DNA of 64,000 nucleotides, from assembly GCA_020891255.1 (NCBI GenBank), contig BQFW01000011.1, positions 1,736,001-1,800,000 on the forward strand, written 5' to 3'. Under the pieces are notes generated by a model. It made no database searches. It was not told where the DNA came from and saw only the letters and a list, made by a program, of their open reading frames with translations. A program made the position numbers and the translations under genes. The stretch is from Entomortierella parvispora E1425. Taxonomy: Eukaryota > Fungi > Mortierellomycota. This document shows, piece by piece, positions 51,657-55,277 of the stretch (positions are counted from its first letter, which is position 1; the number at the start of each line of letters is the position of its first letter).

Positions 51657-54600
51657 TCAATGACACTCTACAAACTGAACATGGACAAGAGTAGGTGAAG
51701 CTGGCATCCAGTTCAGTAAGGACGTGGCTGTCGCGACAGTGACGGTTGTGTGAGGAACTAGTTCTCCCGCATGGTATCGTCCACCACCATTGCCACCGCT
51801 AACTCGGGCAGGATGCACCAGTCCGCTTGTTGTGCAAGGTGCATCCTGCTTTCCGCAGTTCTTAGCGTCACGCACTCTTGCTCCAGTTCCAGCTCCTGCT
51901 CCTATTACTACTCTTGCTCCTGCTCCTCCAGTAGCACTCACGACACCAGCAGCGTGTAATGAAGGCAGATAGTCGGCGCCAGGCAAAGATGGAAGACATC
52001 TTGGCGCCATCACCAGAGCGTCCTTGGCCGCATTCCCTGTCAAGGAGGAAAGCTCCACCATGGCGGTATAACTCGCTGCTGCAAAAATCACTGTGCCTAC
52101 AATGGTCAAGTAAACCCTTGAGATGGCTGCCATTACTTGCCACAGCACGGCCACCATATCGACCTGCAAGGCCCGGAACTGTAGCCTATCTGCATACGCC
52201 GGCAGTAAGCGCTGGCTCAAGATCCTAACGTCCGTATACGAGAATGCCGCCATAAGACCTCGACCCCAAACTCTTTTCAGCGTCAGGACCACTTCCAGGT
52301 AGGCCAAAAATCCATCAAAGTCCTGCTCACTCACATAGAGCTTGTAATCCAAATGGCCGAGAAATCGTCGTTCCAAGTCGTTGATCTCCTTGGTGGTATA
52401 TTGGCCTCGTGTGAACTCGGCCCACTCGGCGTTTGAGAATGTGGCATCAAACAGGTATTTGTCCGCGCAGATAAAAGCGACCAGGATCAAGGATATACTC
52501 GACCATGGTTCCCGCTGTTCTCGATTCTGTGAATTGCTATTATGGCTACGGTGGCTTTGTGTAGACGAGGTCGTTGTAGAGATGGATGAGGTGGGCGAGG
52601 TATTGTTGCTAGAGGAACCGTCGGTGGGAGACGACGGACGACTGTCGCCGCCATAACCCTGACCACTGCCTGACATGAACGAGTCCTTGTTCCGATGAGA
52701 TCTCCTGGTCCAAAACGATGCTGTCGAAGTAGTCAGAGCATGACCATGGTCCGGCCCTTGGTCGAGCCGTGTCCTGTTCTTCTTGTTCAGCGATCGAGAC
52801 AGTCGAGCTTTGAACCGGTCGATATAGATAAGGGCGAGCACCAAGGTCGTGCAAGAGAGCTGGGTTCGTTTCAGGATGCGGTGGATAAAATAAAATACTC
52901 CGGTCGTCTCGTCATCGTCCGCAGAGTCCGACTCTGCTCCGTGCGCTCTTTGGTTTCGTCCATGCTTCGAGTCCCGTCCTTGATCCTCGTCGGTTCTTCC
53001 TTGATGAAGACAAGAACCAAACAATGACATTTCTCGGCCAGTTATCATGGACGCAATCACCGCAGCGGCCAAATCTTCATATATAGAGATCTTGCCACAA
53101 ATATCCATACCTCACAAAACCTAAATTCTCACACCCCTCTGCCTTTTTTTTTTCTATTCTCTTCTGATTTTAAAAACTTCATTGACTCTAAACGATGTTC
53201 CATGATGGACTGGACTCACTGGGGTCATGTCTACTGAGAACAATGGTACTGAAAAAAAATAGAAAATACTATGCCTCCTCGTCACTAGAAATTTCACTGT
53301 TGTCTGTGTCACTATCAAATTCGCGGTCATCATCGTCACTTTCACTGTAGTTTTCATTGTTTTCGAGTCGTCTTTCGTAGAGAATCCGATAGTCCCTCCC
53401 AACCTGGACAGTCTTTTTCCAAACAGCAATAAGCTGTGACTCCTGAATGCCAGCGAAGAGTCCCAAAAGGCGGTTTCGCAGTGACAGCTCAGTCTCGTCC
53501 AAGTTAGGATTGGCTGCAATTGGGTTCTTGACCATTCCCCAGACCATTTCAATCGGCTGTAGCTCGCAATGATACGGAGGTGTCTTGCAAATGGTGTGTC
53601 CGTATTCGTGTGCAATTCGGTATGAAGCAAAGGTCTTGGGGATGTTGAGACCTTTGATGTGCTCAAGAAGCTCGAGTCTAGACTTGATCTTGCCCCGGTC
53701 ATTTGTTGGTAGCTCTATGCCATTCTTTTCGAACCACGAATGGATATCTCTCACACAGGAGCTTGCTTTCGGTACTGGATTCTCTTCGCGGACATGGTAC
53801 TTGGCGCCATCCATGTGAATGTGACAAGGCCCATAGTCTTCATGGAGTGTTGTGCACAGAGCCTCAAACAATCGCTCAAACAGATCCGCATCAAAGTTAC
53901 CGTGGTAGTCATGGTAGTCAGGGGCAATACCCGCCTCTCGGACAAAATCAGGAACAGTCTTCCATAGCTCGTTGTCTGCGGCACGTCCACCCTCTCGACC
54001 ACGCAATTGACCCTTGACCGGCCAGATGAGGATGCTTTTCTTGACGAGCTCTGCCCTGAGCTTGTTGTCAACTCGGAATACCACGAATGCACCGAAAATG
54101 ACAAGCATTGGCTTTCGTCCTCGCTCATTGACAGAGCCTCCAGAAGGCAACCATGTCCGAAGACTGTGATGGTCTAGATGACAATATGACTCATCAAGGA
54201 ACACCTCAGGAACAATTGGAAGACCCTTGGGGTTCAGATTCGAGAGGCGACGCTCGATGTAAACATCACGATAGTCGATCACCGCTTGGGAGTCATGGAG
54301 GATATTCCTCCTGCTTCCTTTGCCGTAATGAAGACCTAGCCGTTTTAATCGACGGACCAAGGTTCGCTTCGCGAAAACGATACCGTGTTTTTCCCGCAGC
54401 TCCTTCAAAACTAGATTCGTTGTCACAGGCACTCCATCTTTGTTGCATGCCAACACAAATTCTCGAATGGCTGCGCCCAAGTCAGTCTCAATGATGTGTT
54501 TTGGTCGACCAATGCGTTTCTCCGAAACCTCCCCCACGCCGTTATAAAACTGAATAGCTTTCCGCGCCGTATCTGAACCGATCCCAGTTATGAGGGCAAG

Positions 54601-55277
54601 ACGCTTGCGGGCGGTGACTTTGCCACGGTGCTCGTGGAAGGCCCCAGTCCCATTCAAGTAGCTTTGGACGTTCGCCAGAATGCAGTATTCATTACGAGTC
54701 AGTCGTGCTGCATTCCGTTTAAATCGAGGATCCGACATGGTAGAGAGATGGGAGTTGCATCTCCAGAGAGCTGAGTGGCGTCCCTTTCTCCCCTTGAGTG
54801 CGCGAAAAGTCATAACTTTTATTAAGGGGTGGAGATCCATATGAAACCGGACATTCAAATCAGAGGTATGGATGTTTTTGGCATGGTCTCTATATTATTT
54901 TTTTTTAAAAAAAAAGGGTAAAAGATGATGGGCAGGTTAGCGCACTGTCCTTCCTGTGTCTACTATGATTCCCGCAGTTGACCAACAGTGGTTTTCTGAA
55001 TCAACATACCGATTAGGTTCAAAGGGATCCTGGTAAACTCATTACGGGCATAGCCATGACTCTTGAGATGGTCCAAAAAAGAATTGTACTCTCTAAGTGG
55101 CTCGCCGTACTAACAAAAAGGGGGACTTGAGTGTGAGTCATCAGTGATATGGAGTCCAACAGGGTAGAATACTGCATAATCCAAGCTTACAGTGACATCC
55201 GAGTGAAGGATCCTCTCCTTGTCCTTGAGCGACTGCTCCTTGCGAAAGTTCTTTCGCCTGCGCTGTTTCGAGGTCAT
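51657..55277 (-). CDS. Pho80/PCL-family cyclin, CNPPD1-like; intron 2 contains a transposon
   Basis: Exon 1 55277-55191 (87 nt), exon 2 55109-55010 (100 nt, phase 1) and exon 3 53074-51657 join in frame as ...RIPLNLI-D-LAAAVIASM. Cyclin box: ILKRTQLSCTTLVLALIYIDR, ICADKYLFD, NAEWAEF, EINDLERRFLGHLDYKL. Confidence 0.85.
53086..54890 (-). mobile_element. IS630/Tc1/mariner-superfamily DNA transposon, 1805 bp
   Basis: TIRs GAGATCTTGCCACAAATATCCATACCTC (53086-53113) and GAGGTATGGATGTTTTTGGCATGGTCTC (54863-54890) match at 24/28 positions as inverted repeats. TATA flanks both ends (53082-85 and 54891-94). It encodes a full DDE transposase. Confidence 0.92.
53269..54738 (-). CDS. DDE transposase, IS630/Tc1 type, with long spacer (DD86E)
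   Basis: Uninterrupted ORF, 489 aa from ATG 54738. It has an N-terminal HTH-like region (GRPK, RTLVRRLKRLG), VFLDESY, IHMDGAKYH and TPPYHCELQPIEMVW. Confidence 0.93.
   Translation of the reverse strand: MSDPRFKRNAARLTRNEYCILANVQSYLNGTGAFHEHRGKVTARKRLALITGIGSDTARKAIQFYNGVGEVSEKRIGRPKHIIETDLGAAIREFVLACNKDGVPVTTNLVLKELREKHGIVFAKRTLVRRLKRLGLHYGKGSRRNILHDSQAVIDYRDVYIERRLSNLNPKGLPIVPEVFLDESYCHLDHHSLRTWLPSGGSVNERGRKPMLVIFGAFVVFRVDNKLRAELVKKSILIWPVKGQLRGREGGRAADNELWKTVPDFVREAGIAPDYHDYHGNFDADLFERLFEALCTTLHEDYGPCHIHMDGAKYHVREENPVPKASSCVRDIHSWFEKNGIELPTNDRGKIKSRLELLEHIKGLNIPKTFASYRIAHEYGHTICKTPPYHCELQPIEMVWGMVKNPIAANPNLDETELSLRNRLLGLFAGIQESQLIAVWKKTVQVGRDYRILYERRLENNENYSESDDDDREFDSDTDNSEISSDEEA

Follow-up and report, generated by a model that had tools for sequence, protein, structure and literature searches.

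An intact DD86E transposon between the branch motif and the 3' splice site of a cyclin intron in Entomortierella parvispora, and its predicted effect on splicing

What becomes of an intron when a transposon is inserted between its branch point and its 3' splice site? The question is raised by a locus of Entomortierella parvispora E1425, which lies in the 64,000 nucleotides (nt) analysed here as a whole and called the window (contig BQFW01000011.1, positions 1,736,001 to 1,800,000), and where an intact transposon of 1805 base pairs (bp) is located in the second intron of a cyclin gene, a few nucleotides before the acceptor. As argued below, the loss or strong reduction of the normal cyclin mRNA is to our judgement the most likely outcome, held with slightly better than even confidence; this outcome is wholly predicted.

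The open reading frame (ORF) 51657-53108 matches Cyclin_N (PF00134) at 31.3 bits (cut-off 23) and PF08613 at 29.1 bits (cut-off 21), and the orthologues give the same cyclin-family profile result, so that, as judged by these profiles, the host gene is a PHO80-like (Pcl) cyclin. A search of solved structures with the cyclin sequence gave no relative. It had been claimed in an earlier reading of the same DNA, made from the letters alone (the sequence-only reading), that two small upstream exons are joined to this cyclin in phase, which corresponds to the following gene model.

55191-55277, minus strand: cyclin exon 1, 29 codons, with the ATG at 55277 and an in-frame TAA just 5' of it, ending before GTAAGC
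55110-55190, minus strand: cyclin intron 1, 81 nt, GTAAGC...TTAG, with an intron at the matching place in the orthologous locus L015
55010-55109, minus strand: cyclin exon 2, 100 nt, 33 codons plus 1 base, after TTAG and before GTATGT
51657-53074, minus strand: cyclin exon 3, after GAAG, with the stop codon at 51657-51659

The model was compared with a set of 44 orthologue proteins that was obtained by a word-based search with exon 3 alone, the named ones all being from Mortierellaceae and the rest metagenomic, and exons 1, 2 and 3 were each searched on their own against the orthologue models. Exon 1 shows 52-93% identity to the first 23-30 residues of 21 of the 44 models, and exon 2 shows 74-100% identity to residues ~30-63 of 27 of the 44, ending at orthologue residue 62/63. 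For exon 3, taken from the Leu that follows the split codon, the match starts at orthologue residue 64/65. Exactly one residue, Asp, stands between exons 2 and 3 in the orthologues (junction NLI-D-LAAA), and it is this Asp that the phase-1 splice gives, with G from exon 2 and AT from exon 3. The claim of in-phase joining is thus borne out, with exon 1, exon 2, the Asp and exon 3 being contiguous in the Mortierellaceae orthologue proteins. Most of the full orthologue models begin MATKQRRRK..KEQS..DK.R....TTY.EPLREYN.FLDHLKSHGYARDEFTRIPLNLIDLAAA.I.SMITGRE, and the closest orthologues are P0001 (82-86% identical) and P0003 (Gryganskiella cystojenkinii).

Note that about 12 of the orthologue models start near MITGREM, a start that the sequence-only reading had named as evidence that would speak against the upstream exons, and that others carry exons 1 and 2; we do not take the former as a refutation. 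The MITGRE starts were considered as true starts and rejected, the models in question being metagenome ORF calls or shorter gene models, and they are read as annotation artefacts because Podila humilis is represented by a full model (P0004) as well as by a short one (P0010). For the present cyclin, the public model (P0002), which has 339 amino acids, begins at an internal Met and is without exons 1 and 2; this truncation fits a disrupted locus, where it is to be read as annotation and not as transcript evidence. The cyclin is single copy in the assembly, its paralogues being only 29-40% identical, and no empty allele, i.e., the cyclin without the element, is present in the assembly.

Some observations on the cyclin protein itself are added here. 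A Ser/Thr-rich insert of ~100 residues divides the cyclin box (window 51657-52760, minus strand). All Mortierellaceae orthologues share a conserved hydrophobic segment (AVLWQVMAAISRVYLTIVGTVIFAAASYTAMVEL) at the C-terminus, an unusual feature in a PHO80-like cyclin. In the model of P0003, 12 extra residues (GKKKTLRLLHQN) replace the single Asp at the intron-2 junction, probably due to mis-predicted intron borders.

The element that interrupts intron 2 has the following parts.

53086-54890, minus strand: transposon of the IS630/Tc1/mariner group, DD86E, autonomous, 1805 bp, as defined by its terminal inverted repeats (TIRs), TA flanks, Pfam match and genome copies
54863-54890, minus strand: 5' TIR, 28 bp
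53086-53113, minus strand: 3' TIR, 28 bp, holding a spurious ATG at 53108
54891-54892, minus strand: upstream copy of the TA target-site duplication
53084-53085, minus strand: downstream copy of the TA target-site duplication
53269-54738, minus strand: transposase ORF, 489 amino acids plus stop, intron-less, the sole ORF of the element, with D182, D310 and E397

The TIRs are imperfect, reading GAGACCATGCC... at the 5' end and ...GGCAAGATCTC at the 3' end of the element on the minus strand; they start with GAGAC/GAGAT, and when the flanks are included the arms comprise 33 nt that are 88% complementary. The duplication is taken to be TA because all 13 of the full-length copies in the assembly (see below) are flanked by TA...TA while their 4-bp flanks differ from copy to copy. 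The earlier description of an element of 1805 bp with TA on both sides and in the same orientation as the cyclin is in agreement with these results, both the transposase ORF and the cyclin being on the minus strand. Likewise, the cyclin ORF start at 53108 had been called an artefact, and rightly so: the ATG is inside the 3' TIR and therefore is not the ancestral start.

With these boundaries, the geometry of intron 2 can be given exactly.

54893-55009, minus strand: 5' part of intron 2, with the donor GTATGT at 55009-55004, the branch motif CTAAC at 54940-54936 and the pyrimidine tract at 54930-54907
53075-53076, minus strand: native acceptor AG of intron 2, at the phase-1 junction NLI-D-LAAA

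Intron 2 extends from 55009 (GTATGT) to 53075 (AG) and is now 1935 nt long; subtracting the element and one TA leaves 128 nt. The last base of the element is 9 nt before the acceptor AG and 11 nt before the first base of exon 3. These measured values replace the approximate ones of the sequence-only reading, in which the element was placed about 7-10 nt from the acceptor and its removal in silico gave an intron of about 130 nt. The intron length was compared with that of intron 1 (81 nt) and of the short introns of L015 only; a heuristic intron census of the window was tried as a length reference and rejected as too noisy, false introns being called inside cyclin exon 3.

No CTNAY motif other than CTAAC occurs in the host-derived part of intron 2 or in the listed terminal parts of the element, and the last 200 nt of the element have none at all. 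In the restored intron there is no AG from 54946 to the acceptor, and CTAAC is then 55 nt from the acceptor. Such an AG-free stretch is the pattern expected of a real branch point at CTAAC, which is here a putative one assigned by its motif. Both the branch motif and the pyrimidine tract stay upstream of the element, on its far side from the acceptor just as had been noted before, and the insertion puts the native acceptor ~1.86 kilobases (kb) from the branch motif.

What the intron looks like without the element can be seen in related DNA. A metagenome scan for orthologous loci gave one locus, L015, on a soil contig with 57% identity, which has the same three exons and an element-free intron 2 of ~90 nt at the same phase-1 position (...ATA G/gtgcgt ... 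ttag/AT CTT GCT). The suggestion that orthologous DNA be inspected for the empty site has thus yielded a short intron without the element, at this one locus and this level of identity. The expected empty-site sequence on the minus strand is ...AATAATATATATGAAG/ATTTGG.

The age of the element is indicated by its copies. A search of the window's own assembly of 38.9 Mb gave 13 full-length copies, among which eight are identical over all 1805 bp and five have 1806 bp; this is the copy number that the sequence-only reading had proposed to determine. The identical copies imply a very recent movement of the element, which, going by these copies, is currently or very recently active in the genome.

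It is noted separately that in each of the five 1806-bp copies a T-run at element position ~948, within the transposase ORF, is longer by one T. They are found at G000 (L009-L013; C11:123231-125036, C13:1101867-1103672, C7:1571171-1572976, C7:1516730-1518535 and C1:1935075-1936880) and represent two sequence variants. The extra T is either a shared inactivating frameshift or a Nanopore homopolymer error.

The transposase matches the Pfam family DDE_3 at 33.1 bits (cut-off 28.6), and in its alignment with 12 relatives D182, D310 and E397 are invariant. In the same alignment its start (MSDPRF...) and its length agree with those of the relatives, and it is because of this agreement that the transposase is considered intact. 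At the N-terminus HTH_33 is matched at 18 bits, which is under the cut-off of 25, and residues 77-80 form a GRPK motif. A spacer of 86 residues separates the second D from the E (DD86E). The relatives occur in Mortierellaceae, Rhizophagus, Aphanomyces and Phytophthora, while a search of solved structures with the transposase sequence gave no match. Regarding the earlier claim of an intact Tc1/IS630-type element, the intactness and the type are upheld by the DDE_3 match above cut-off, the invariant DDE triad, the homologue-like length and the TA duplication, and the label is refined: the spacer is DD86E, in the Sailor-like range, and not that of a classical DD34E Tc1.

Two points on the transposase models may be mentioned. 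Starting at the first TIR base, the 5' leader of the element (54738-54890, minus strand) has no stop in frame with the transposase, and the close metagenome relatives P0049 and P0050 are likewise open upstream of the conserved start Met; the open leader frame may be due to chance, with odds of roughly 1 in 10. The other concerns P0047, a public model of 286 amino acids from Entomortierella parvispora that is 100% identical to part of the transposase. It begins in another frame (MSEDESQCL...) and is linked to the true frame by a predicted intron (window 53751-54128, minus strand), and it looks like a gene-prediction artefact rather than a real spliced product.

For the splicing of the interrupted intron, one further feature is essential.

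54888-54891, minus strand: AGAG, two new AG dinucleotides and candidate cryptic acceptors, formed by the duplicated TA and the first TIR bases (TAGAG)

The new AGs, at 54891/54890 and 54889/54888, are the first AGs after the branch motif, located 47 and 49 nt downstream of it. The first one (YAG) is in good context, and from it the frame reads E-TMPKTSIPLI-stop, with the stop after 11 codons and a peptide of 73 residues. The second one (GAG) is in poor context and happens to share the frame of the whole transposase. Reporters in S. pombe show that a 3' splice site near the branch point beats a distant one and that splicing becomes weaker with longer spacing (PMC9508853), and it is from this preference that the predicted loss or strong reduction of the cyclin mRNA is derived.

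We propose a pathway that would proceed as follows. Its starting point is the insertion of the autonomous cut-and-paste element at a TA in intron 2, between the branch motif with its pyrimidine tract and the acceptor. With the acceptor now ~1.86 kb from the branch motif, the joining of exon 2 to exon 3 would be lost or much reduced, and the spliceosome would most likely take the first AG after the branch motif, the spacing of 47 nt being near the original one of 55 nt. The element would thereby enter the mRNA and the frame would end after the 11 added codons, so that the allele would be null or weak. Its survival would be explained either by an insertion so recent that selection has not yet removed it or by a cyclin that is not needed in culture.

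Several points weigh against this pathway. A weaker motif, ATAAT at 54898-54894, would, if it were the branch point, put the new AGs too close for use. In L015 an AG stands between the best branch motif and the acceptor, showing that the first-AG rule is not strict in the family. The genome encodes a homologue of Cactin (212 bits), a protein that helps the use of distant acceptors in S. pombe (PMC9508853). Exon 3 is without decay, but an insertion of such youth would not be expected to have led to any. Finally, as RNA folding predicts, pairing of the TIRs in the RNA could bring back the geometry between branch point and acceptor.

The last point leads to the alternative that survives best, although we still regard it as unlikely. 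It states that the pairing of the TIRs in the pre-mRNA loops out the 1.75-kb interior of the element and buries the new AGs, so that the normal cyclin mRNA is made. The predicted TIR duplex has an energy of -39.2 kcal/mol, compared with -15.9 +/- 3.7 kcal/mol for shuffles, a value that leaves out the cost of loop closure; the stem has ~33 bp (54895-54863 with 53113-53081) and would leave ~48 nt of single-stranded RNA between the branch motif and the native acceptor, which sits 5 nt past the stem base. Such a rescue has a parallel in the yeast COF1 and UBC13 introns, where a stem between the branch point and the 3' splice site makes the effective distance shorter and hides competing AGs (PMC3239191), and the same idea has been put forward for S. 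pombe (PMC9508853). The known examples are, however, short local stems and not loops of 1.75 kb. Moreover, splicing is often co-transcriptional, and here the polymerase passes the 5' arm and the cryptic AG well before it reaches the 3' arm. A native hairpin between a U-run and an A-run, located between the branch motif and the acceptor, was also tried as a fold and rejected, being no better than shuffles (z = -1.3).

In another scenario, which is distinctly less probable than the pairing of the TIRs, the insertion is confined to some nuclei within the coenocytic mycelium, or came about in the laboratory line cured with antibiotics, and nuclei with the empty site supply the cyclin. The identical copies of the element, indicating very recent transposition, would be consistent with this, as would the history of the sequenced line, which was obtained by curing with ciprofloxacin and passaging single colonies (PMC8759367). 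The assembly, however, holds only the filled site.

It is also conceivable, with a probability that we put a shade lower again, that the 1.9-kb intron is removed normally via a cryptic branch point in the 3'-terminal region of the element, making the insertion nearly neutral. In favour of this, branch motifs are loose in many fungi and intronic transposons are often tolerated. The absence of CTNAY from the last 200 nt of the element argues against it, however, and so do the 20 AGs between 53250 and the native acceptor, which would make the native AG not the first choice from most upstream branch sites.

Since every insertion makes TAGAG at the 5' end and the leader is open in the transposase frame, the element might be thought of as a natural splice-acceptor trap, in which the splicing of exon 2 to the second AG (54889-54888) would give at birth an in-frame host-transposase fusion, putatively a cyclin N-terminus of 62 residues, 50 leader-encoded residues and the full transposase of 489 residues driven by the cyclin promoter, but this idea we consider very improbable.

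The event is an ordinary intronic transposon insertion. Mobile-element insertions near 3' splice sites can cause mis-splicing, e.g., Alu in human disease genes and Tc1 in C. elegans genes, and as in those cases the present element sits towards the end of an intron, where it separates the acceptor signals or takes their place; unlike them, it is a DNA transposon in an early-diverging fungus and the splicing outcome is a predicted one. The same questions, of the greatest possible distance between acceptor and branch point and of its bridging by the fold of the RNA, are posed by the branch-distant 3' splice sites of COF1 and UBC13 in S. cerevisiae and of rap1 intron 2 in S. pombe (PMC3239191, PMC9508853). 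By contrast, the distances there are tens of nucleotides and evolved, while that here is ~1.86 kb and accidental.

As to the family of the element, it shares with classical Tc1/mariner elements (DD34E/DD34D) the TA duplication, the short TIRs, the length of ~1.8 kb, the DDE_3 match and the cut-and-paste logic, but the spacer has 34-41 residues there and 86 here. The superfamily Sailor (DD82E) of IS630-Tc1-mariner has a reported spacer range of DD78E-DD111E and has been reported from the Mortierellaceae species Lobosporangium transversale and from oomycetes (PMC8533490). The present element resembles Sailor in its long spacer, which is inside that range, in its single intron-less transposase gene and in its classic short TIRs (PMC8533490), and the relatives of its transposase occur in Mortierellaceae, Rhizophagus, Aphanomyces and Phytophthora. 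It is unlike Sailor in that the latter mostly has a TATA duplication and TIRs starting with GT or CC (PMC8533490), while here TA is found in 13 of 13 copies and the TIRs start with GA. Membership in Sailor would thus be a lead only, the comparison having been made by description.

The locus provides a natural experiment on how far a fungal acceptor may sit from its branch point and on whether the pairing of TIRs can rescue the splicing. Its usefulness is raised by the exact position of the insertion, by the youth of the element and by the existing public strand-specific RNA sequencing data (DRA013164), which are probably those of the same strain. In addition, the eight identical intact copies mark an active or recently active autonomous transposon in Mortierellaceae. 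Because this family is of industrial interest, the element could serve as a tagging tool.

Finally, we note the surroundings of two other copies. The copy L005 is nested within the reading frame of the transposase of another transposon (L005:702-1499 and L005:3307-3696, minus strand): its left flank matches the piggyBac-type DDE_Tnp_1_7 at 1e-29, and an open stretch of 396 codons crosses the empty site. The copy L009 adjoins an open frame of 406 codons (L009:3308-4525, minus strand) with a PIF1-like helicase match at 8e-11, which is possibly part of a Helitron-type element.

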